Source: Pristiophorus japonicus
Taxonomy: Eukaryota
NCBI RefSeq assembly: GCF_044704955.1
Contig: NC_091999.1
Span: 43,834,001-43,898,000 of the forward strand
Direction: 5' to 3'
DNA length: 64,000 bases
The notes under the pieces: generated by a model
The model's input: only the letters and a program-made list of their open reading frames with translations
Database searches by the model: none
Told to the model about the DNA's origin: nothing
Program-made: the position numbers and the translations under genes
In this document: positions 3,804 to 32,940 of the stretch, one piece after another
Numbering within the stretch: the first letter of the stretch is position 1
Layout: each line of letters opens with the position of its first letter

Positions 3804-3811
3804 TCACTTGA
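3804..3811 (-). CDS. IGHM: IgM TM2 exon remnant (expected V-K-stop; one G missing at the acceptor junction)
   Basis: Minus strand reads TTTTATCTCTCTATTACAG TCAAGTGA; an intact exon would read CAG|GTC AAG TGA to give the conserved KVK tail. Confidence 0.7.
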
Positions 3812-3926: not shown

Positions 3927-4054
3927 CTTCACCAGAGTGATGGCAGTGCTGTAGGAAATGCTCAGGAAGAACAGGATGATGAATGTGGAAGCGGTTGTCC
4001 AGATTTTGTCGCTCTCGTCCTCGTACTCTTCACTCCAGATGTGGTCTGAGGAAT
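3927..4054 (-). CDS. IGHM: IgM transmembrane exon TM1
   Basis: CCCCGTAG acceptor; translates (D)SSDHIWSEEYEDESDKIWTTASTFIILFFLSISYSTAITLVK with the CART motif; GTGGGA donor. Not in the ORF track (too short). Confidence 0.95.
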
Positions 4055-4769
4055 CTACGGGGATGTAGGGGAGGAAATATATTCAGATCGTTTTTAATGC
4101 GGGATGTCATACTATTAATTTATTTCCTCTTTTCTTTCCCGTAAGGTATTAGTTTATACTCTAATTTAACTTTGAATGTATACCTTGTGTTAAGTTAATC
4201 ACTCTCAGCAACCTCTCTCTGTGCCTCACTCCACAGTCGTTCTTTCTTTATGATCCTCTTTTCGTCCGTTTTGGAAAATATGATAGTTTTTCTTCAATCT
4301 CAGAGGCTAATTGATTTTGGATGACTTCGTTACGCTTGATCATTCCAGAATAATATGATGAAATATCGAGTGAGGATTACAGCTGGATCTCTATCGCTTT
4401 ACCGGTAGGTTAAGGTAGTTAATTATTTGGAGCCTGCCAAAGGGGCTATTTAAGAGATCAGTTGTGAGTTTTTACCTTGTTTATTTATTTGTTAAGACAA
4501 TGCTCTGTCCATAATTAACATATCGGTTTGCAAGAACTATATTGATCCAGTGTATGTGTAAGGATAGAATAGTGAAATGTGAGATATTATGGTATCAGGT
4601 ATTATTTATTCTGGCCAAGCATTGGTACTTTGTCCGGCCAAAAACTGCATTTTAATTGACATTCGTCTATAGCCGGACGTTTTTGTTTGTGCTCTTTACT
4701 GTTTATGTGAGTGCATGACTATCTCTTGTTTTGGATTAGTTCATGTTTCTGTGTCTCTGTGAGGGTGTT

Positions 4770-7700
4770 ACTGTGTGTGTTTATGTAATTGTGTGCGTGC
4801 TTTTCTCTGTGTGTGTACGTTTATGTGTAAAAGTGTGTGTGTGTGTGTGTTTATGTGTAACTGTGTTTGTTGATGTGTAAGTTTGTGCACGTGTGCAGTT
4901 GTAAGATTGAGTATGCCTGTGTAAATCTTTGTGTTATTTTGTGTAAGTGGGCCTGTGTCTATATGGAAGCGTGTGTTTATCTGTAATTATGAGTGTGCGA
5001 TTTGGTGTAGTTGGGTGCAGGTAAGTTTATGTATAAGCACGTCCATGTCTAAGGGTTTGTGTATTGATGTTTGTGTGTGTATGTTTGTGTGCAAGTGTGT
5101 TCACGTGTGTGCATTTGTGTAAGTGTATGTGTATCCTTGTGTATATGTATGTAAGTTCATGTGTGTGTTTGTCTGTAAGTGTAAGTGTGTGATTATGTCT
5201 GAGTGTTCGTTTATGTTTAGGTGTAAGCGTGTGCGTGTTTACATGTAACAGTGGGTTTGCAGGTAAGTTTGTGTGTGTTTGTGTGTGTGTGTTTTATGTT
5301 AGTGTGTGTGTGGATTGATGTGTGTGTTTATGTGTGTGTAAGTGTGTGTAAGTGTGTTTTTGTAAGTGAGTGTTTGGATTGATGTATGTGGAAGTGTGTG
5401 TTTGTAAGTGGGTGTTTGGATTGACGTGTGTGAAAATGTGTGTGTGTAAGTGTGTATAAGTGTGCTTTTTGTAAGTGTGTTTGGATTGATTTTTGTGTTT
5501 ATGTGTGTTTAAGTGTGTGTACGTGTGTTTTGTGTAAGTGCATGTGTGGATTCATGTGTGCGTTTATGTGTTTGTAAATGTGTTTTGTGTAAGTGTGTAT
5601 AAGTGTTTGCACGTGTGTTTTGTGTAAGTGTGTGTGTGGATTGACGTGTGTGTTTATGTGTGTGTAGTGTGTGTGTGTGTGTGTTTTGGGTAAGTGCGTG
5701 TGTGGATTGATGTGTATGTTTATGTGTGTGTAAGTGTGCTTTGCGTAAGTGCGTGTGTGGATTGATGTGTATGTTTATGTGTGAGTAAGTGTGTTTTGTG
5801 TAAGTGTGTGTGTGGATTGATGTGTGTGTTAATGTGTGTGTAAGTGTGTGTACCTGTGTTTTGTGTAAGTGTATGTGTGGATTGATGTGTGTGTGTATGT
5901 GTGTGAAAGCGTGTTTTGTGTAAGTGCGTGTATGGATTGATGTGTCTATTTATGTGTGTGCAAGTGTGCTTTTTGTAAGTGTGTTTGGATTGGTATGTGT
6001 GTACTTATGTGTGTGTAAGTGTGTTCCGTGTAAGTGTGTGTAAGTGTGCTTTGTGTAATTGTGTGTTTGGATTGATGTGTGTGTGTAAGTGTGTGTAAGT
6101 GTATTTTGTGTAAGTGTATGTGTGGATTGATGTGAAGTAATTATGGGTGTGTAAGTGCGTGTCAGTATGTTTTGTGAAATGTGTGTGTGGATTGAAGTGT
6201 GTCTTTATGTGTGTGTAACTGTGTTTTGTGTAGTGTGTGTTTGGATTATTGTCTATTATTGCTAATGTTCGAAGTTTCAGAGAGTATCAATAACTGGATT
6301 TTACAATGATGGTTTTCATTATATTCTAGTTATGTGTAATATTGTGTGTCAGAGTGTTAACGTATGTCATTATATATAAGTCTATGTGTGTTTATGTGTA
6401 ATTGTGCACTTACACAAAAACACAAACACTTACACAAAATCATCAACACACTTCCATGTGAACACACACAACCTCACTTTCATATTTATTCTCCCGACTC
6501 TGTAAATGTGTTCTGTTTGAGGAATAATGTGACGTCAGCCGAAAGAATGCAACAATTCAACCGATGGGCCTCAGAAACATCAGGGACACTGTGAGAAACC
6601 CGCAGAGGATTAATTCACCAGTTTAGATATGGCCCGTTAGAATTCAACATGTTCGTTTACAATTAACAGGTACAATTTCACCCCAACACTATTTAAAAAT
6701 ATTACGTGGAATAAATAGTTATTTCAGAATAGAATACTCATGTGGCAAGTTTAAAATCTTTACACCATGGGTTAGAATCTCACATTGTACACAGTGTGTT
6801 TATGTGTGTGTAAATGTGATTTTTGTAAATGTGTATAAGTGTTTGTAAGTGTGTGTAAGTGTTTGCACCTGTGTTTTGTGTAAGTGTGTGTGTGGATTGA
6901 CCTGTGTGTTTATGTGTGTGTGCGTGTGTGGATTGATGTGTATGTTTGTGTGTGTAAGTGTGTTTTGTGTAAGTGCGTGTGTGGATTGATATGTGTATTT
7001 ATGTGTGCATAAGTGTGTTTTGTGTAAGTGTGTCTGTGGATTGATGTGAGTATTTATGTGTGTGTAAGTGTGTTTGGTGTAAGTACGTGTGTGGATTGAT
7101 GTGTGTGTTTATGTGTGTGAAAGTATCTTTTTTGTAAGTGCGTGTATGGATTGATGTGTGTATTTATGTGTGTGTAAGTATATGCAAGTGTGTTTTTTGT
7201 AAGTGTGTGTTTGGATTGGTGTGTGTGTGTTTATGTGTGTGTAAGTGTGTTTGGTGTAAGTGTGTGTGTGGCTTGATGTGTGTGTTTATGTGTGTGAAAG
7301 TATGTTTTATGTAAGTGCGTGTATGGATTGATGTGTGTATTTATGTGTGTGTAAGTATATGCAAGTGTGGTTTTTGTAAGTGTGTGTTTGGATTGGTGTC
7401 TGTGTGTTTATGTGTGTGTAAGTGTGTTTGGTGTAAGTGTGTGTGTGGATTGATGTGTGTGTTTATGTGTGTGAAAGTATGTTTTATGTAAGTGCGTGTA
7501 TGGATTGATGTGTGTATTTATGTGTGTGTAAGTGTGTGCAAGTGTGCATTTTGTAAGTGTGTGTTTGGATTGGTGTGTGTGTTTATGCGTGTGTAAGTGT
7601 GTTTTGTGTAAGTGTGCTTTGTGTAAGTGTGTGTGTGGATTGACGTGTGTTTTTATGTGTGTAAGTGTGTGTAACTGTGTTTTGTGTAGTGTGTGTTTGG
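4770..7700. repeat. Compound GT-rich minisatellite (GTGTGTAAGTGT / GTGTGGATTGAT motifs) in the CH4-TM1 intron, two blocks
   Basis: Low-complexity TG repeats at 4770-6240 and 6790-7700. Confidence 0.9.
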
Positions 7701-8250
7701 ATTGATATCTATTATTGCTACTGTTCGAAGTTTCAGAGAGTATCAATAACTGGATTTTACAAAGATGGTTTTCATTATATTCTAGTTATGTATAATATTA
7801 TGTGTCAGAGTGTTAATGTATGTCTTTATATGTAAGTCTATGTGTGTTTATGTGTAATTGTGCACTTACACAAAAACACACACACTTACACAAAGTCATC
7901 AACATACTTCCATGTGAACACACACAAACTCACTTTCACATTTATTCTCCCTGGCTCTGTGTAAATGTGTTCTGTTTGAGGAATTATGTGACGTCAGCTG
8001 AAAGAATGCAACGATTCAACCGATGGGCCTCAGAAACATCAGGGACACAACTGTGAGAAACCCGCAGTGGATTCAATCACCAGTTTAGATATGGCCCATT
8101 AGAATTCAACATGTTTGTTTACAATTAACAGGGACTGCTGCACCCCCAACCCTATTTAAAAATATTACGTGGAATAAATAGTTATTTCAGAATATAATAC
8201 TCATGTGGCAAATTTAAAATATTTAGACCATGGTTTAGAATCTCACATTG
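6225..8250. repeat. Tandem duplication: ~570-bp unique segment 6225-6790 repeated at 7680-8250
   Basis: Near-identical sequence; twin ORFs 6364-6594 and 7820-8056 give a period of ~1456 bp. Confidence 0.9.
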
Positions 8251-9097: not shown

Positions 9098-9489
9098 TCA
9101 TTGACAAGAATTGACGGTGTCCATCAGAACAAGGGAAATGTTCACAAAACTGGGTTTACCGCTGGATTTATTGACGATTCTGTTGGTGATCTTCAAGGGG
9201 ATCGCTTCATGTCCCACCACACAGGAGTAAGAAGCGCCGCTGGCCCACTCCTCGGCTGCAATGGATAGCAGGCTGTACATGAAGAAGGAGCTGCTGCCGT
9301 TCTCCGCCATCACCTCGGTGTTCTTGTAGTTGCCGGAATCCACCGGCTTGTCATTGACGGTCCATTTGACAAAGATCTCTCGGGGGGAGAAACCTCTCAC
9401 TAAGCAGCTGAGGCTGACCAACCTCGGAGCGGAGACTTCTTCTACCGAGGGCAGGAGGACAGACACGGCCGGTTCCCGCCGATCTTTTG
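9098..9489 (-). CDS. IGHM: IgM CH4 exon plus secretory tailpiece
   Basis: TTCTACAG acceptor; (A)[64 protein letters not shown]; penultimate Cys and NIS sequon; internal donor G|GTAAAC at 9160/9159 for splicing to TM1. Confidence 0.97.
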
Positions 9490-10402: not shown

Positions 10403-10711
10403 CCTTTTCCTTGTGGATGGAATCTCTGATCGGAGTCGGCATATCCTGATGGCTCACAACGCAGTAGAACTTATCCCCACTCAGCCAGTCTTGTGTCGAG
10501 ATGTTTAAGTTGCTGATCACGCTGTTGGGATCCTCTCCCGGTTGGACGGCAATCTCTGATTTCAAAGCCTCCTTTTCTCGGGTCCAGGACACGGTGAGCC
10601 CATAAGGAGCGTCAGACACGACGCAGGTTAAGGTCACCGTCGCCTCCAGTAAGACCTGTTCCAGTGACGGTGGGCGAAGAGTGATTTTTGAATCACTGCA
10701 TGGGACATCCA
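10403..10711 (-). CDS. IGHM: IgM CH3 exon
   Basis: TTTCGCAG acceptor, G|GTGAGC donor, 309 bp phase 1-1; (V)[45 protein letters not shown], a C1-set domain. Confidence 0.97.
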
Positions 10712-12662: not shown

Positions 12663-12980
12663 CCTGAGATCTGCTGAAGTTACGGCTTTGCGTGACCCCT
12701 TCATGAGTGACTTGGCAGGTGTAGACCGAGCCGGTGAACCATTCCTCGGCGGGGACTGTCAGCCGACTGGCCGTCGAGAAGTTCCCGTTCACCTCAAAGA
12801 CGGGAGAGGTGACGAAGCCCGAATCCAGGAGTTGTCCACTCTTCAGCCAATTCACGGTCAGTGACTTTGGCCGGAAATCGATGATTGAACACACGGCGCT
12901 TGCATATCTGCTGGTGGTGATTTGTTCAGTGGAACTCAGCGTGAGGACAACAGTTGGAGGACCGATGTCCGGTTCAGGAT
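12663..12980 (-). CDS. IGHM: IgM CH2 exon
   Basis: T9-GAAG acceptor, G|GTAAGA donor, 318 bp; (D)[49 protein letters not shown]. Confidence 0.96.
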
Positions 12981-13626: not shown

Positions 13627-13926
13627 CTGGCATTGTGATGGCCCAGACCGACACACCACGTCGAACCTCACAGAAGATTGTGCTGCTCCCCACATCTGAC
13701 TTGGTGATGGTTAACTGGCTGCTCTGGGTGTAGATTCCTTTCTTGTTGAACACTGACGGGTAGGTCTTCAATGCAGTGGTGATAGGATCTTTATCTTTCT
13801 TCCAGGAAAGGCTGGTGATATCGGGGGAGTAGTCCATCGCCAAACAGCCGTATGTGATGGAGCCATCGGTGCTGGGTTGTTCACAGGAGGAGAGCAGGGC
13901 GTAGAGATTGGGGGGAAACGGTGTTA
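13627..13926 (-). CDS. IGHM: IgM CH1 exon
   Basis: TTTCTCAG acceptor, G|GTTAGT donor, 300 bp; (V)[49 protein letters not shown]; the light-chain-pairing Cys is present. Confidence 0.97.
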
Positions 13927-17700: not shown

Positions 17701-19959
17701 CCCCGTGGTGTTTCGGAACTGCTCCTTCTGACTGTCAAAAGCTGGGTTACTGATCTCATTTCAGCGGCGACTCCTCAACCTTAAAGTCAATCTTTTACGT
17801 TTCTCACATATACCAGTTTTTTAAATAACTGAGTTAAATGACACTCCCCGCAATACACGATCACAATCCAGAAGTTTTGCAACCCGTCAGGAGGACTGAT
17901 GATTCTCACACAGTGAGCAGGCGCACAGGAACAGAACTGACACAAACGGTGCAACAACGGTGCTCCAGTGAGAGAGACCAGTTCTATCTGTTAATTTCAA
18001 TGAAGCTGTTTGATTTCTAATTTATTTCTTGTCAATTACCAACCACCTCAACTCTGCAGATTTTTTGAAATTAAACTGATCTTTATTTGAGAAACTATTC
18101 AACATCCAGCCATTCCTCCCTCTCGGTCGACTATCTTGTAAACCGTGTAAAAATTAATTTCCCTGAAAATAAGTATCTGGAAATAATTCTCATTCCACGG
18201 AAAGTGCTGCGCGTTAAACGGGACTAGCTAACTGCGTAAGAATGTCACAATCCAGGAGACATATACATTGAAACCTGATCACCCACTGATTTGACATATT
18301 TGCAATAGTAAATATAACCTGTAAAATCATCGAGGCAAAATCAACTAAAATATTAAGCGATAGCTTATCGAACTCAGCACAGCCGAGTTATACATGCATT
18401 ATCTTCTAAATTAATTTAGGAATTAATTAAACATTCTCTCCAACCCTTGTGTTAGTGTAATAACTGTAATGTTGACCAGTATGCAATGCAATTGCAAGAG
18501 ATCATTTATGTTTAATGAATTAGAACGAATATTACATTTTAAGTTTGTGTTCGTGTTAGCTGATTATTGGAAATACTCTGAGTACCTGTCTGGCACTTCC
18601 TCCTCAGAAGCACACGTACCTGGAACTTTTGAAATTAACTTAATGTGCTTGAATTTCAGTCTTACTGATACAATTAATGAATAATAATTTAAAAACCTTT
18701 TCTGCCTGGCAACTTGTGATATATTAAGGTTTACTCAACTTACCATAACAATTCATCAACAGTAAAATATTAAGCAGCATATTAATACATAAATACAATC
18801 AGAAAAATAAATTATTTTTACTTAACTCAAATCACATTTGACTAATTGACGCTAATTACGCAGTTCTACGTCTGTCCCGTTCTCTACCGATACATTTTTA
18901 AATTCTACATATTCTGACATAACAAAAACTGCGTCTATTTTCAGAGTACATTGCACATGATGGATTGAGGAGTGGACTATTTTAAATAGTTCACTGTCCG
19001 GCCCGGGTCACAAGTCCGATGTGCTGTAAACCACTTGTTTACTAAACTGGACTCTCGAGCTGAAATATTCTCCACAATCTTAACTTCCCAAAAATGGTTT
19101 TCTTAATTAAAACCAGTTTGCAGTCAGTAGCAGAACTTCTGCTATTTAATAACACAGACAATCATTTACAGTTCACTCCCATTATTCACACAATGCCCCC
19201 AAATTAATTATTAAATACATTCTGCTATTTCTTGAAACTAATTTCCAGAATGGTTAGTGTAAAACTGTAGGATAACAAATCATTCAGGCCATCTGCCACA
19301 CTGAACCTGAATGAGAAAATGGAGGAGAGACTTTGTTCATCAATTTAATATTAATAATAATTAACATAATTCTCAGATATGACCTGTGCTTTGTCTACCG
19401 TTCTATCCCTTATATAGCACCGCTTTGGGAGAAAGGAAGTTGTGTTAAATTCTAAACAAGATGAACATTTTTTAAGTAAATTAATCTGCTTGAATTTCAA
19501 TGGATTATTTGCCTATCTCCAGCCTATGCAGTCTTGAATTTGAATATAATCACATGAATAATTATTTGACTGCCGGTGACGCCTGACTCACAGCCGCTGA
19601 TCTTGCAAACTGTTTAAGATTAGTTTAGTGATAATTCTATCGGTATCAAACAAAACACAATAGTGATTCAATAACAAATTTCGGTTGCACAGTAAGAATT
19701 TCATATTAAATTGACAAAATGCAATTTACAACACGGCTTTGAGTTATAATTAAAGACACTGCCGATCATCTCTGTAAACAGGAGGTAAAAAGTAACTGAA
19801 CTCCCGACTCAAACTGAACACACGGTGGAATCAATATGTTGTCAGTGAACTAATTGCAGGCATAATTAATAATTGTATCCAGCCTCTAAAAGTTTCTGCT
19901 CCTCTTAATGGAGCCCAGTGTACAGCAGGATTTTGGAAGGCAAATAATATTAAGAAAAT

Positions 19960-21100
19960 TATATTGATATTATAACATATTTTAATAACATTGGAAGATA
20001 TTATCGCATTATAATATTATAATCGGTTTGTTAATCGTAATTTATTTCAGCTACAACCTGAATAATTGCTAATTATATAGCTGGTAATTACAGTTACGTT
20101 TCACTCAGTAAATATCAGCATCGTAAACATAAATTTATAGTTGAATATATAATTATCACCAATAATTGTTATGTTAAAATATATTTCAATGATTTCTGAT
20201 TCCTAAAACCTTCCTGTTCTCTGCCTACAATCTGCTTTCAAACAGTTTCAAACACATATCTTGTTTGTATTCGATCAGGAACCTGCTGCTGCCCGCTGTC
20301 ACCGATATTAAACATTGTAGAAACGCGAAATAGTTTCACAAATTTTTGGTATTCTGAATAACACCGGCACAAACTCTCCTCAGCAGATCAATACTAAATC
20401 ACATCACTGAGGGGCGGACAGAACCTTTCATGAACAGATCCTTCATTCTCTAAACCATTTCAGCAGAATTAAATGTATCATTGCAAAAAGTCTCTTTACA
20501 GAATCACCGAAGCCGCCTAAAACTAAAATAACTTATGATTGACTTCAACTGAAATATAAAATAATGACAGCAGAATTGTGATTTGATGGATCATGTAAAA
20601 TACATTAATGTTAATATTATAGCATATTTTAATAATAATGGGTGATATTACTACATCATTATAATGTTAGTAATATTAATTTAAATCAGGTCCATCTGGA
20701 AATGTGTTAAATTTTCAGTCCTTAATTACAGCAACACTTCAAGTATTGAATCTGTGCATTCGGGAACATTCGGTCAGTAGATGACAAATGTAATTTTCAC
20801 TAAAATCTTTAAATTCCTTAAGAATATATATTGAGCGCTAAGATTTATGTTATGTGTTTAAAATGTTCTTTCAAAAATATTTAAACACAATGTTTGTATT
20901 CGATCAGAAAAATCGCAGCAATCATAGGTCACCGAGATTAAACATTGCAGAAGTGTCAAACAGTGTAACAACTTTAAAGGATTTAACGTAACTCAAGCAC
21001 AGAAACTCGTTAGCAGATAAACACCAAATCACTTCAACAACAACTTATGTGGAGAAACAGTTGAATTCTATAATCACTTTGTAGCAGAATTACATAAAAC
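19960..21100. repeat. Diverged ~630-640-bp tandem duplication in the AT-rich J-proximal intron
   Basis: TGTTTGTATTCGATCAG..GTCACCGA.ATTAAACATTG at ~20262 and ~20891; matching AT-rich tracts at ~19965 and ~20610. Confidence 0.65.
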
Positions 21101-21227
21101 ATTGAAAAATCTCAATAGAGAACCCACCGAACCCAAGTTTCAGTGAACGAAATAATTATTAAAATAAAGAGAAATGTAAAATAAAGGCACAAATACAACA
21201 GTTGCAGAATGTAGGAATGTTCCTTAC

Positions 21228-21292
21228 CTGCAATCACCGTCACCATGGTCCCTGGTCCCCAGTAGCCCATGGCGTCCTTATTCCCGTGGTCC
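21228..21292 (-). CDS. IGHJ: Germline-joined D-JH segment (65 bp)
   Basis: G GAC CAC GGG AAT AAG GAC GCC ATG GGC TAC TGG GGA CCA GGG ACC ATG GTG ACG GTG ATT GCA G|GTAAGG = DHGNKDAMGYWGPGTMVTVIA; WGxG motif and phase-1 donor compatible with CH1. The J identity is firm; the D origin of the 5' part is inferred. Confidence 0.9.
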
Positions 21293-21320
21293 CACAGTGA
21301 TAGGAACCCGTACAAATATT
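21293..21320 (+). other. 12-bp-spacer RSS 5' of the D-J block
   Basis: CACAGTG (21293-21299) + ATAGGAACCCGT (12 bp) + ACAAATATT (21312-21320). Confidence 0.92.
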
Positions 21321-21725
21321 GCATTCAGTCTCTGCTCAGTACTGATTCTCAACATTCATTCGAAATACACATGCACTTCAAATACAAATTCGCTTCTTAT
21401 CAAGTTTAGAATTTAGCCAACAGTTTGTAGAACAAATAGAAGGAGAACACAGTTCTCACCAGCTCCCTGCAGGTATCAGGCACAGTGAATCGAGCATCAT
21501 GTCCAGCTGGGCAATTGTTGACACTGTTAACATTAAGCAGGAGCACAACCGAAACCTCCCTCAGTACATTGGTTACAGTGTTATATTTTCACCATTGAAT
21601 TATCAGTGTCTTAGTTTTGTAAGAAGCGGTTTGTGGTCTGGTTTTGAACAATGCCGTTATCATTGCATTTGACACAATTACTGACCGTCAGGTTATGATG
21701 GACGTTATTGAATTCCCCCTCGATC

Positions 21726-21764
21726 TGTTCTTGTACGGGTCCAGCCCTGGTTCCTCTCGCTGTG
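21726..21764 (-). other. 23-bp-spacer RSS 3' of VH
   Basis: CACAGCG (21764-21758) + AGAGGAACCAGGGCTGGACCCGT (23 bp) + ACAAGAACA (21734-21726). Confidence 0.93.
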
Positions 21765-22069
21765 GTGCCTTGCACAGTAATAGATGGCGGTGTCTTCGCT
21801 CCGCAGTTTCTTCATGTCCAACGCGAAGATGTTGCTTGAAGTATCTTTGGACACAGTAAATCGGCCCTCAGTCCCCGGGGTGTAATGCTTGTCCGATGAA
21901 CTGTAATATCTAATCAGCCACTCCAGCCCCTGTCCGGGAACGTGGCGGACCCAGTACATGTAGCTGCCACCAAGATCTAAGCCGCTGGTTTTACAGGTCA
22001 GTCTCAGGGAGCCCCCGGGAATCCTGGTCTCTGCCTCGGGCTGAGTCAACACCATATCCGACTGGACAC
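21765..22069 (-). CDS. IGHV: Immunoglobulin heavy-chain V exon (shark IgM-type VH), unrearranged and intact
   Basis: TTTCTACAG acceptor; (R)[61 protein letters not shown]; both canonical Cys and the Trp are present. Confidence 0.98.
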
Positions 22070-22194
22070 CTGTAGAAATAATCAGAAACCCCGAGGATCA
22101 ATCCTGTTGAAACGATTCCTAATTCTGTAACATTCCAGAGAGACTAACACTGAGACAGGAACAATGAAAGACTTGGACAATAAAAACTACTCAC

Positions 22195-22240
22195 GGGAAA
22201 AGAAAGCCAGCAACAGACTGAGAGAAATAGCCGACCTCAT
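22195..22240 (-). CDS. IGHV: VH leader exon (46 bp)
   Basis: ATG..MRSAISLSLLLAFFS + C|GTGAGT; 125-bp intron to the V exon; frame preserved. Confidence 0.95.
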
Positions 22241-22332
22241 CCTCCTGGCAATGTGTGGTGAATGATTTCGGCAAGAACTCACTGGGCAAACGCACTCCCA
22301 GACTGTTGTATTGCGGTCCCAGTGACCGGCAG

Positions 22333-22430
22333 TTAAATACCCGGGAGGTGGGGGCGAGGTTACAGGCGCCGCCCGTTGATTCCCTGATAGAGGCGGATTC
22401 TGGGTCCACGTCACTCCTTCCACATCACCA
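22333..22430 (-). promoter_or_regulatory. VH promoter: TATTTAA box plus CRE/TCR-beta-like decamer, no octamer
   Basis: TATTTAA at 22339-22333; AGTGACGTGG at 22415-22406 preceded by the related GGTGATGTGG; no ATGCAAAT seen. Shark VH promoters are known to lack the octamer and carry a CRE-like element. Confidence 0.75.
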
Positions 22431-22845: not shown

Positions 22846-23023
22846 ACTTGTGCAGCTCCAGCTGAGAGAAGTCAAAAAAGAAGTAGAAAGAAATCAATAG
22901 GTGACGTCACAGCCAACGTGGGAAGTGATTGGCTGCTGATTGGTGAGTAGTTTTTCTTTTTCTTTTTAGTCAGTAACTTTTAACATTGTTGTCGGCAATT
23001 TAAGTGTATCTAAGGGTTGAGTC

Positions 23024-23971
23024 ATGGCAGGACAGCTCGGTCACGTGATATGCTCCTCCTGTACCATGTGGGAACACGGGGACAAAACCAGTGTCCCTGA
23101 CGACTACATGTGCGGAAAGTGTGTCCACCTCCGGCTACTGACGGTCCGCGTTGCGGAGTTGGAGCTGAAGGTGGATTCACTCTGGAGCATCCACGATGCT
23201 GAGAACGACGTGAGTATCACGTGTAGCGAGTTGGTCTTACCGCAGGAGAAGGGTCCACAGCCAGCGAGGGAATGGAAGACCAGCAGGAAGAGTAGTGCAA
23301 GGAAGGTAGTGCAGGGGTCCCCTGTGGTCATCCCACTGCAAAACAGATACACTGCTTTGAGTGCTGTTGAGGGGGATGACTCATCAGGAGCGGGCAGCAG
23401 CAGCCAAGTTCATGGCACCGTGGCTGGCTCTGTTGCACAGGAGGGCAGGAAAAAGAGTGGGCGAGCGATAGTGATAGGGGATTCAATTGTAAGGGGAATA
23501 GATAGGCGTTTCTGCGGTCGCAACCGAGACTCCAGGATGGTATGTTGCCTCCCTGCTGAAAGGGTCAAGGATGTCTCGGAGCGGGTGCAGGACATTCTAA
23601 AAAGGGAGGGAGAACAGCCAGTTGTCGTGGTGCACGTTGGTACCAAAGACATAGGTAAAAAAAGGGATGAGTTCCTACGAAATGAACTTAAGAAGCTAGG
23701 AGCTAAATTAAAAAGTAGGACCTCAAAAGTAGTAATCTCGGGATTGCTACCAGTGCCACGTGCTAGTCAGAGTAGGAATCGCAGGAGAGCTCAGATGAAT
23801 ACGTGGCTTGAGGAATGGTGCAGCAGGGAGGGATTCAAATTCCTGGGGCATTGGAACCGGTTCTGGGGGAGGTGGGACCAGTACAAACCGGACGGTCTGC
23901 ACCTGGGCAGGACCGGAACCAATGTCCTCGGGGGAGTGTTTGCTAGTGCTGTTGGGGAGGAGTTCAACTAA
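23024..23971 (+). CDS. CR1 ORF1p: zinc finger / leucine zipper plus SGNH (GDSL) esterase domain
   Basis: CSSC..CGKC, heptad leucines, IVIGDSIVR, VVHVGT and PDGLHL motifs; 315 aa open. Confidence 0.92.
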   Translation: MAGQLGHVICSSCTMWEHGDKTSVPDDYMCGKCVHLRLLTVRVAELELKVDSLWSIHDAENDVSITCSELVLPQEKGPQPAREWKTSRKSSARKVVQGSPVVIPLQNRYTALSAVEGDDSSGAGSSSQVHGTVAGSVAQEGRKKSGRAIVIGDSIVRGIDRRFCGRNRDSRMVCCLPAERVKDVSERVQDILKREGEQPVVVVHVGTKDIGKKRDEFLRNELKKLGAKLKSRTSKVVISGLLPVPRASQSRNRRRAQMNTWLEEWCSREGFKFLGHWNRFWGRWDQYKPDGLHLGRTGTNVLGGVFASAVGEEFN

Positions 23972-26925
23972 TATGGCAGGGGGATGGGAACCAATGCAGG
24001 GAAATAGAGGGAAACAAAAAGGAGGCAAAAACATATGACAGAAAGGAGATGAGGAAAAGTGGAGGGCAGAGAAACCCAAGGCAAAGAACAAAAAGGGCCA
24101 TTGTACAGCAAAATTCTAAAAGGACAGAGGGTGTTAAAAAAACAAGCCTAAAGGCTTTGTGTCTTAATGCAAGGAGTATCCGCAATAAGGTGGATGAATT
24201 AACTGTGCAAATAGATGTTAAAAAATATGATGTGATTGGGATTACGGAGACGTGGCTCCAGGATGATCAGGGCTGGGAACTCAACATCCAGGGGTATTCA
24301 ACATTCAGGAAGGATAGAATAAAAGAAAAAGGAGGTGGGGTAGCATTGCTGGTTAAGGAGGAGATTAAGGCAATAGGTAGGAAGGACATTAGCTTGGATG
24401 ATGTGGAATCTATATGGGTAGAGCTGCAGAACACTAAAGGGCAAAAAACGTTAGTGGGAGTTGTGTACAGACCTCCAAACAGTAGTAGTGATGTTGGGGA
24501 GGCATCAAACATGAAATTAGGGGTGCGTGCAATAAAGGTGCAGCAGTTATAATGGGTGACTTTAATATGCACATAGATTGGGCTAACCAAACTGGAAGCA
24601 ATACGGTGGAGAAGGATTTTCTGGAGTGCATAAGGGATGGTTTTTTAGACCAATATGTCGAGGAACCAATTAGGGGGGAGGCCATCTTAGACTGGGTGTT
24701 ATGTAATGAGAGAGGGTTAATTAGCAATCTCGTTGTGCGAGGCCCCTTGGGGAAGAGTGACCATAATATGGTGGAATTCTGCATTGGTATTGAGAATAAA
24801 ACAGTTAATTCAGAGACCATGGTCCAGAACTTAAAGAAGGCTAACTTTGAAGTTATGAGGCGTGAATTGGCTGGGATGGATTGGCGAATGATACTTAAGG
24901 GGTTGACTGTGGATGGGCAATGGCAGACATTTAGAGACCGCATGGATGAACTACAACAATTGTACATTCATGTCTGGCATAAAAATAAAAAAGGGAAGGT
25001 GGCTCAACCGTGGCTATCAAGGGAAATCAGGGATAGTATTAAAGCCAAGGAAGTGGCATACAAATTGGCCAATAATAGCAGCGAATCTGGGGACTGGGAG
25101 AAATTTAGAACTCAGCAGAGGAGGACAAAGGGTTTGATTAGGGCAGGGAAAATGGAGTATGAGAAGAAGCTTGCAGGGAACATTACGACGGATTGCAAAA
25201 GATTCTATAGATATGTAAAGAGAAAAAGGTTCATAAAGACAAACGTAGGTCCCCTACAGTCAGAATCAGGGGAAGTCATAACGGGGAACAAAGAAATGGC
25301 GGACCAATTGAACAAGTACTTTGGTTCGGTATTCACGAAGGAGGACACGAACAACCTTCCGGTTAAAAAAGGGGTCGGGGAGTCTAGTAAGGAGGAGGAT
25401 CTGGGGGAAATCCTTATTAGCCGGGAAATTGTGTTGGGGAAATTGATGGGATGGAAGGCCGATAAATCCCCAGGGCCTGATGGACTGCATCCCAGAGTAC
25501 TTAAGGAGGTGGCCTTGGAAATAGTGGATGCGTTGACAGTCATTTTCCAACATTCCATTGACTCTGGATCAGTTCCTATGGAGTGGAGGGTAGCCAATGT
25601 AACCCCACTTTTTAAAAAAGGAAGGAGAGAGAAAAAAGGGAATTATAGACCGGTCAGTCTGACATCGGTAGTGGGTAAAATGATGGAATCAATTATTAAG
25701 GATGTCACAGCAGTGCATTTGGAAAGAGGTGACATGATAGGTCCAAGTCAGCATGGATTTGTGAAAGGGAAATCATGCTTGACAAATCTTCTGGAATTTT
25801 TTGAGGATGTTTCCAGTAGAGTGGATAAGGGAGAACCAGTTGATGTGGTATATTTGGACTTTCAGAAGGCGTTCGACAAGGTCCCACACAAGAGATTGAT
25901 GCGCAAAGTTAGAGCACATGGGATTGGGGGTAGTGTACTGACATGGATTGAGAACTGGTTGTCAGACAGGAAACAAAGAGTCGGAGTAAATGGGTACTTT
26001 TCAGAATGGCAGGCAGTGACTAGTGGGGTAACGCAAGGTTCTGTGCTGGGGCCCCAGCTGTTTACACTGTACATTAATGATTTAGATGAGGGGATTAAAT
26101 GTAGTATCTCCAAATTTGCGGATGACACTGAGTTGGGTGGCAGTGTGAGCTGCGAGGAGGATGCTGTGAGGCTGGAGAGCGACTTGGATATGTTAGGTGA
26201 GTGGGCAAATGCATGGCACATGAAGTATAATGTGGATAAATGTGAGGTTATCCACTTTGGTGGTAAAAACAGAGAGACAGACTATTATCTGAATGGTGAC
26301 AGATTAGGAAAAGGGGAGGTGCAAAAAGACCTGGGTGTCATGGTACATCAGTCATTGAAGGTTGGCATGCAGGTGCAGCAGGCGGTTAAGAAAGCAAATG
26401 GCATGTTGGCCTTCATAGCAAGGGGATTTGAGTACAGGGGCAGGGATGTGTTGCTACAGTTGTACAGGGCATTGGTGAGGCCACACCTGAAGTATTGTGT
26501 ACAGTTTTGGTCTCCTAACCTGAGAAAGGACATTCTTGCTATTGAGGGAGTGCAGCGACGGTTCACCAGACTGATTCCCAGGATGGCGGGACTGACCTAT
26601 CAAGAAAGACTGGATCAACTGGGCTTGTATTCACTGGAGTTCAGAAGAATGAGAGGGGACCTCATACAAACATTTAAAATTCTGACGGGGTTAGACAGGT
26701 TAGATGCAGGAAGAATGTTCCCAATGTTGGGGAAGTCCATAACCAGAGGTCACAGTCTAAGGATAAGGGGTAAGCCATTTAGGACCGAGATGCGGAGGAA
26801 CTTCTTCACCCAGAGAGTGGTGAACCTGTGGAATTCTCTACCATAGAAAGTTGTTGAGGCCAATTCACTAAATATATTCAAAAAGGAGATAGATGAGGTC
26901 CTTACTACTAGGGGGATCAAGGGGT
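23972..26925 (+). pseudogene. CR1 ORF2p (APE endonuclease plus reverse transcriptase), disrupted by a 1-bp frameshift near 24500 and a stop at 26844-26846
   Basis: LNARSI, ITETWL, VYRPP (24049-24552), then GDFN, SDHN, YRPVSLTS, QGSVLGP, KFADDT (24552-26846); the sister copy continues LPEKVVEA where this one has TAG. Confidence 0.92.
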
Positions 26926-30859: not shown

Positions 30860-32940
30860 AGAGAGACAGTGTCGAGGATAATATAAACAGAGACAGTGCC
30901 TGGCGTAATATAAACAGAGACTGGATCGAGTGTAAAAAAACAGAGACAGCATTCAGTTTAATGTAAAAAGAGACAGGGTCAGTACTTAAGGAGGTGGCCT
31001 TGGAAATAGTGGATGCATTGACAGTCATTTTCCAACATTCCATTGAATCTGGATCAGTTCCTATGGAGTGGAGGGTAGCCAATGTAACCCCACTTTTTAA
31101 AAAAGGAGGGAGAGAGAAAACAGGGAATTACAGACCGGTCAGCCTGACATCGGTAGTGGGTAAAATGATGGAATCGATTATTAAGGATGTCATAGCAGTG
31201 CATTTGGAAAGAGGTAATATGATAGGTCCAAGTCAGCATGGAGTTGCGAAAGGGAAATCATGCTTGACAAATCTTCTGGAATTTTTTGAGGATGTTTCCA
31301 GTAGAGTGGACAAGGGAGAACCAGTTGATGTGGTATATTTGGACTTACAGAAGGCTTTCGACAAGGTCCCACACAAGAGATTAATGTGCAAAGTTAAAGC
31401 ACATGGGATTGGGGGTAGTGTGCTGACATGGATTGAGAACTGGTTGTCAGACAGGAAGCAAAGAGTAGGAGTAAATGGGGACCTTTCAGAATGGCAGGCA
31501 GTGACTAGTGGGGTACCGCAAGGTTCTGTGCTGGGGCCCCAGCTGTTTACACTGTACATTAATGATTTAGACGATGGGATTAAATGTAGTAAATCCAAAT
31601 TTGCGGATGACACTAAGTTGGGTGGCAGTGTGAGCTGCACGGAGGATTCTATGAGGCTGCAGAGCGACTTGGATAGGTTAGGTGAGTGGGCACATGCATG
31701 GCAGATGAAGAATAATGTGGATAAATGTGAGGTTATCCACTTTGGTGGTAAAAACAGAGAGACAGACTATTATATGAATGGTGACAGATTAGGAAAAGGG
31801 GAGGTGCAAAGAGACCTGGGTGTCATGGTACATCAGTCATTGAAGGTTGGCATGCAGGTACAGCAGGCGGTTAAGAAAGCAAATGGCATGTTGGCCTTCA
31901 TAGCGAGGGGATTTGAGTACAAGAGCAGGGACGTGTTGCTACAATTGTACAGGGCCTTGGTGAGGCCACACCTGGAGTATTGTGTACAGTTTTGGTCTCC
32001 TAACCTGAGGAAGGACATTCTTACTATTGAGGGAGTGCAGCGAAGGTTCACCAGACTGATTCCCGGGATGGCGGGACTGACCTATCAAGAAAGATTGGAT
32101 CAACTGGCCTTGTATTCACTGGAGTTCAGAAGAATGAGAGGGGACCTCAAAGAAACGTTTAAAATTCTGACGGGGTTAGACAGGTTAGATGCAGGAAGAA
32201 TGTTCCCAATGTTGGGGAAGTCCAGAACCAGGGGACACAGTCTAAGGATAAGGGGGAAGCCATTTAGGACCGAGATGAGGAGGAATTTCTTCACCCAGAG
32301 AGTGGTGAACCTGTGGAATTTTCTACCAGAGAAAGTTGTTGAGGCCAATTCACTAAATATATTCAAAAAGGAGTGAGATGAAGTCCTTACTACTAGGGGA
32401 ATCAAGGGATATGGTGAGAAAGCAGGAATGGGGTACTGAAGTTGCATGTTCAGCCATGAACTCATTGAATGGCGTTGCAGGCTAGAAGGGCCGAATGGCC
32501 TTCTCCTGCACCTATTTTCTATGTTTCTATGTTTCTATACAGGGTCTAGTATAATATACAGAGGGACAAATTCTACTGTAATTTAAATAGAGACATGGTC
32601 TAGTGTAATATAAACAGGGATCGTGTCTAGATAATTATAAACAGATACAGTATCTAGTGTAATTGAAAAGAGAGACAGGGTCTAGTGTAATATAAACTGG
32701 GGCAGGGTTTAGTACAATATTAACAGAGGCAGCGTCTAGTGTAATATAAGCAGAGACAGGGTGTAGCGTAATATAATCAGGGACAGAGTCTAGGGTAATA
32801 TAAACAGGGACAGGGTCTAGGGTAATATAAACAGGGACAGGGTCTAGTGTAATATAAACAGAGACAGGATCTTGTGTAATATAAACAGAGACTGGTTATA
32901 ATGTAATATAAACAGGAACAGGGTCTAGTGCAATATTAGA
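30860..32940 (-). repeat. 27-bp satellite in reverse orientation, interrupted by a CR1 insertion
   Basis: AGAGACAGGGTCTAGTGTAATATAAAC units at 30860-30980 and 32539-32940. Confidence 0.85.
30981..32538 (+). mobile_element. 5'-truncated young CR1 copy of the same family as 22634-27056, with 8-bp TSD
   Basis: 460-aa open RT ORF nearly identical to the upstream copy; ACAGGGTC at 30973-30980 and 32539-32546; (TTTCTATG)n tail. Confidence 0.93.

Follow-up and report, generated by a model that had tools for sequence, protein, structure and literature searches.

The classical shark IgM cluster has two D segments between its V and J and a 22/23-RSS on the J, with the signals arranged as 23 / 12-22 / 12-12 / 22. 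Departures from this arrangement in the form of the germline-joined antibody genes of sharks and rays constitute the main evidence for RAG acting in germ cells and reshaping antigen-receptor loci. RAG-driven germline joining in shark germ cells is established (PMC2193156; PMC2193153), and the germline forms given in reviews and commentaries are VD-J, VDD-J, VD1-D2J (VD-DJ) and VDJ (PMC5192425, PMC4279169, PMC2193153, PMC3308330, PMC8355894). The joined IgH clusters of the horned shark and the little skate (VD-J/VDD-J, VD1-D2J and VDJ), in which the RSS pair between the fused segments has been lost, are of the same family and mechanism as the locus described here (PMC2193153, PMC2193156, PMC5192425). 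However, in those forms the V is always joined to a D, whereas in the present cluster the V is free, and both the V 23-RSS and what we read as the D 5' 12-RSS survive; fusion of D to J as such is already known from the VD1-D2J clusters. A germline V-DJ form is absent from the forms given in the five reviews and commentaries listed above, which bears out the remark in the initial annotation that V-DJ is not commonly reported; an older mention is possible.

The same topology, with the V unjoined, the D(s) joined to J and the 5' D RSS kept, is found in the nurse shark as V-DDJ, a somatic two-rearrangement ('2R') intermediate that is prominent in Group 5 genes (PMC2435157). In contrast to that product, which arises per lymphocyte and contains two Ds, the cluster studied here appears to have one D, is present at paralog-level depth in bulk DNA and is matched in its layout by a diverged paralog. 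Mammalian DJH and light-chain V-J rearrangements share with it the same final step, a single 23/12 V-to-(D)J deletion with one diversifying junction; however, the mammalian DJH is made afresh in each pro-B cell from many D and J segments, whereas the DJ here is fixed within one minicluster. Finally, the TCR beta and delta loci have the layout V-23 / 12-D-23 / 12-J, and at least one paralogous J in this genome likewise has a 12-RSS; a layout of this type is the likely parent of the present one, although the present cluster is an IgM and not a TCR one. In terms of novelty, it is the particular set of segments joined, and not the mechanism, that is out of the ordinary: the locus is a rarely listed variant of the germline-joined genes and not a new system, and the gain is incremental, in that a known phenomenon is extended.

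The minus strand of the window (the whole 64-kb stretch of DNA analyzed here) encodes a complete IgM minicluster comprising a leader, a VH, four Cmu exons, a secretory tail and TM exons. At about 18.6 kb in length, it falls within the size limit of about 20 kb for cartilaginous-fish IgM miniclusters. The gene is a shark- or ray-type antibody heavy chain in a typical cartilaginous-fish IgM minicluster: it has (i) a V-set VH that ends in YYCAR and is followed by a 23-RSS; (ii) a single WGxG J with a splice donor, a few hundred bp from the V; (iii) four C1-set Cmu exons, a secretory tail and two TM exons, the second of which is one base short. Its exons are as follows.

22195..22240, minus strand: leader exon of 46 nt, with its ATG at 22240..22238 and a gt donor at 22194, followed by the intron before VH
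21765..22069, minus strand: VH exon (Pfam V-set, E 2.2e-16), ending in ...YYCARH, then the 23-RSS
13627..13926, minus strand: Cmu1 exon, C1-set, with a phase-1 acceptor and donor
12663..12980, minus strand: Cmu2 exon, C1-set, with phase-1 splice sites
10403..10711, minus strand: Cmu3 exon, C1-set, with phase-1 splice sites
9098..9489, minus strand: Cmu4 exon and secretory tail (...VNSCQ, stop), C1-set, E 5.4e-21, with an internal TM donor after 9160
3927..4054, minus strand: TM1 exon, ending in ...AITLVK, phase 0
3804..3811, minus strand: start of TM2, TCAAGTGA after the acceptor, one G short of GTC AAG TGA

The leader, V and Cmu1-4 have open frames and correct phase-1 splicing, and to this extent the earlier statement that all L, V and C exons are intact holds; it does not extend to TM2, which looks one G short of Val-Lys-stop. 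In protein searches the best relatives of the VH are shark Ig VH sequences with 67-72% identity (Chiloscyllium, Heterodontus HV01 and Scyliorhinus torazame). A search of sequencing runs found no RNA run containing the stretch, and a literature search for the J peptide yielded human antibodies only. A TATA-like TATTTAA lies upstream of the leader at about 22339.

The region between the VH and the J splice donor is where this minicluster parts from the canonical layout. It consists of the following elements.

21726..21764, minus strand: VH 23-RSS, made up of CACAGCG, a 23-nt spacer and ACAAGAACA, directly after ...YYCARH
21321..21725, minus strand: V-to-D intersegment of 405 bp, which would be deleted on V-to-DJ joining
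21293..21320, minus strand: 12-RSS, in gene orientation the nonamer AATATTTGT, a 12-nt spacer and the heptamer CACTGTG, read as a D 5' RSS
21228..21292, minus strand: DJ block of 65 nt adjoining the 12-RSS, its J frame reading DHGNKDAMGYWGPGTMVTVIA, with a gt donor at 21227

The initial annotation had counted only two RSSs between the VH and the J splice donor, 405 bp apart, with a 65-bp block next to the 12-RSS and with no separate D, no D 3' RSS and no JH 22/23-RSS. When both strands of 21200-21800 were scanned for heptamer/nonamer pairs under relaxed criteria, the VH 23-RSS and the 12-RSS were likewise the only ones returned, and on recomputation both lengths were exact, the nonamer-to-nonamer distance between the two signals (21725..21321) being exactly 405 bp. 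The locus thus departs from the V-D1-D2-J layout in that there are no free D segments with RSSs between V and J, and from the canonical 22/23-RSS on J in that a 12-RSS is found instead, both on the DJ block and on a free paralogous J. The surviving signals, a 23-RSS and a 12-RSS convergent on one strand, fit the 12/23 rule and deletional joining; as had been noted, the rule is still obeyed, the V 23-RSS pairing with the remaining 12-RSS. Their fit to consensus is 6/7 for the V heptamer and 7/9 and 6/9 for the nonamers, the lower value being that of the 12-RSS.

Across the 64-kb window (both strands, six spacer lengths), six RSS-like sites match at least 13 of 16 consensus positions. Two of the six coincide exactly with the coding borders of the V and the J, which argues against chance. 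The J motif occurs once in the window, in the DJ block. As to the other sites, the one at 17909, within the J-C intron, lacks a flank resembling coding sequence and was set aside as a chance match, and the hits at 6871-7406 are spurious products of a CA-rich simple repeat. Within the intersegment, a lone perfect palindromic heptamer is present at 21481-21487 (CACAGTG on the plus strand, CACTGTG on the minus strand); at spacings between 10 and 25 no nonamer accompanies it. Either a relic or chance could account for it, about 0.05 such heptamers being expected in 405 bp.

The VH 23-RSS and the 12-RSS are also close to each other in sequence. Apart from a single 11-nt spacer gap they are near-identical, with 23 of 28 positions in common, and the 9-mer CCCGTACAA is found in the 64 kb only at these two signals. 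The intersegment is by virtue of this likeness bounded by inverted repeats, much like the ends of a transposon. The likeness itself may reflect constraint, conversion or ancestry.

The makeup of the 65-nt block becomes apparent from Logan short-read contigs of three DNA runs from the same species, which were aligned to 20900-22350 at 80% likeness; the three runs represent one sample of unstated tissue, possibly the assembled individual. A free paralogous J, on a contig present in all three runs, agrees with the J side as far as 21275, where about 230 unlike letters set in; on the plus strand these begin with AA, CACAGTG, a 12-nt spacer and TCAAATACT. Judged by this alignment, the paralogous free J is about 50 nt long (2 + 48) and has its own 12-RSS. 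A contig from a VD-joined paralog, on the other side, shows the VH match up to 21768, followed by AA, a 17-nt stretch and the heptamer CACGGTG (gene orientation). The 17 nt by which our block exceeds the paralogous J (21292..21276) match this 17-nt D at 12 of 17 positions, for which the chance expectation in that register is about 5e-5; over its final 4-5 nt the D part departs from the paralog D, which could reflect either trimming or nucleotide addition. The extra 17 nt match a single 17-nt D and are too few to hold another, so one D suffices and the block is by this comparison one D plus J (17 + 48 nt) and not D1-D2-J. Its two parts are given below.

21276..21292, minus strand: D-derived 17 nt, GGACCACGGGAATAAGG, absent from the paralogous J and with the 12/17 match to the paralog D
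21228..21275, minus strand: J-derived 48 nt, ...AMGYWGPGTMVTVIA, with the gt donor at 21227; the paralogous J is 2 nt longer and then reaches its heptamer

Of the earlier proposal that D(D)-J was fused and that the 12-RSS is the 5' RSS of D1, the D-J join and the assignment of the 12-RSS to a D are retained, and the second D is given up, the 17 nt amounting to a single D. The 12-RSS is read as the 5' RSS of the D on account of its position and its difference from one J-type RSS. Compared with the paralogous J and D, both end points of the missing DNA lie at most about 2 nt from the heptamer borders, and deletion end points so placed are characteristic of V(D)J coding joints. The cluster accordingly has the structure of a germline-joined one: two segments are fused, both intervening RSSs are lost and the ends lie at heptamer borders. 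The likely explanation, in our view, is that a RAG-type deletion in the germ line joined the single D of a cartilaginous-fish IgM minicluster to its J.

The germline status of the fusion can be gauged from the same contigs. In each of the three runs of the one sample, contigs with 0-1 mismatches extend from 107 bp upstream of the 12-RSS through that signal and the DJ block into the beginning of the J-C intron (21139-21427). Their depths of 26-38 are above those of most paralog contigs listed, a comparison with paralogs only and not a statement of copy numbers. Further, a 370-nt paralog contig, about 86% alike, includes the block and the 12-RSS (21217-21318, with four gap letters) colinear with 21399-21600; going by this contig, the diverged paralog has the same V-DJ layout. 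A layout common to a diverged paralog suggests that the fusion is inherited, and the D-J fusion probably predates a duplication. The claim that D and J were fused in the germ line while the V stayed free is thereby strengthened: the V keeps its 23-RSS, the contig depth is at the level of paralogs and a diverged paralog is alike.

Briefly, we propose the following history for the cluster. The parent would have had the layout V-23 / 12-D-22 / 12-J. A RAG-type D-to-J deletion in the germ line would have removed everything from the D 3' RSS through the D-J intersegment to the J 12-RSS, leaving behind the VH with its 23-RSS, the 405 bp, the D 5' 12-RSS, the 65-nt DJ block and the J splice donor. 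One 12/23-compliant V-to-DJ deletion would then complete the variable exon, and, if the cluster is used, its junctional diversity would all be concentrated at a single joint, in the manner of a light chain. A blunt V-to-DJ join of the full ends is out of frame; a join via the CAC codon common to the V end (21767..21765) and nt 5-7 of the block (21288..21286) would be in frame and give CARHGNKDAMGYW. The CDR3 of a product rearranged from this V would be expected to end in GNKDAMGYWGPG. A V-DJ cluster of this kind would be a naturally occurring heavy-chain gene that diversifies at one junction only. A cluster joined in the germ line at D-J only would show that germline fixation extends to the other joining order, known as a somatic one from the nurse shark.

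Among the competing readings, the one that fares best accepts the germline D-J join and regards the cluster as an unused relic that does not rearrange or does not support B-cell development; we take this to be a possibility of some weight, if a minority one. In its favor, the missing G in TM2 places the usual Val-Lys-stop out of frame, with a predicted membrane IgM tail of 68 frameshifted residues; the octamer was not found within 660 bp upstream of the leader; and the search of the protein collection with the VH ORF returned no rearranged products or transcripts of this V and nothing more than 72% identical to it. The TM2 defect, along with the 6/9 nonamer of the 12-RSS and the 6/7 V heptamer, may mean that the cluster is poorly used or dead. 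However, the cluster has kept its leader, V, DJ frame, both RSSs, four C exons and secretory tail intact, the contig with the exact DJ-RSS sequence is deeper than most paralog contigs listed and the diverged paralog keeps the layout; the last two observations fit retention after duplication. Taking the opposite direction, we would suggest, as a tentative extension, that the V-DJ clusters could form a duplicated and maintained one-step IgM subfamily with a semi-invariant, innate-like CDR3 (of the CARHGNKDAMGYW type), perhaps deployed in early life. If such a maintained V-DJ subfamily exists, it would be the heavy-chain counterpart of light-chain-style rearrangement, in a genome with TCR beta/delta-like RSSs.

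An alternative route to the block dispenses with the direct D-to-J deletion and has an unjoined and a joined (VDJ or VD-DJ) cluster exchange DNA inside the D, by gene conversion or unequal crossing-over. The genome does offer the materials, with many paralogous clusters, VDJ-joined ones included, that are 80-90% alike and could permit exchange. Two contigs join the V straight to the J end (21252-21769) with 26 and 37 other letters between, an arrangement that marks them as paralogs VDJ-joined in the germ line whose D region differs; a single run from a second study (X5) contributed only the VDJ sequence of a paralog. That both VDJ-joined paralogs found differ in their D-region sequence tells against them as donors in such an exchange, and a simple coding joint fits the junction end points; we hence deem an exchange improbable. 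As a separate observation, one of the VDJ-joined paralogs appears to have a TGA at the expected J Trp codon.

A reading without any D, in which the block is a long J with its own 12-RSS and the D was lost by ordinary deletion or was never there, draws on the free paralogous J, since that J bears a 12-RSS and shows that a 12-RSS beside a J is normal among the relatives and not diagnostic of a D. Normal JH segments with a 12-RSS and a length equal to that of the block had been named in the initial annotation as an observation that would count against a D-J fusion; the 12-RSS is indeed there, but the length is about 50 nt as against 65 nt. Moreover, the likeness to the paralog J breaks off abruptly 17 nt before the heptamer, those 17 nt match the paralogous D, and the spacer and nonamer of the paralogous J 12-RSS are unlike those of the cluster's 12-RSS, with only 2 of 12 spacer positions in common. 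The long-J reading is accordingly very unlikely. An equally unlikely alternative explains the structure by an assembly error, or by a DJ intermediate formed somatically in lymphocytes of the sequenced tissue. It can appeal to V-DDJ being a real somatic shark intermediate (PMC2435157) and to the unstated tissue of the sample, but has against it that in three runs contigs with 0-1 mismatches cross the D-J junction, the 12-RSS and the 107 bp upstream of it at depths of 26-38, at which a polyclonal somatic product would not assemble, and that a diverged paralog has the same layout.

Returning to the germline D-to-J deletion as the preferred origin of the block, the paralogous J also bears on the layout of the wider locus. 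The expectation of two Ds and a JH with a 22/23-RSS, taken as the baseline at the outset, fails for the relatives found here, the paralogous J of about 50 nt having a 12-RSS. Together with the DJ block, this 12-RSS points to RSS layouts unlike that of the textbook shark IgM cluster, and its occurrence on a free J suggests that the clusters of this genome could generally have a TCR beta/delta-like layout, one that would also permit direct V-to-J joining.

Retroelements and a simple repeat are further features of the window. A non-LTR retrotransposon at 23021-26843 on the plus strand lies about 0.8 kb upstream of the leader; its ORF1 resembles a GDSL esterase, and its ORF2, of 784 codons, is of the endonuclease/reverse-transcriptase type. 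Further upstream, at 30967-32373 on the plus strand, is another RT fragment, and many further RT fragments are dispersed over the window. The Cmu4-TM1 intron contains about 3 kb of a strongly skewed CA-rich simple repeat (4700-7800), with a GC skew of about 0.5.
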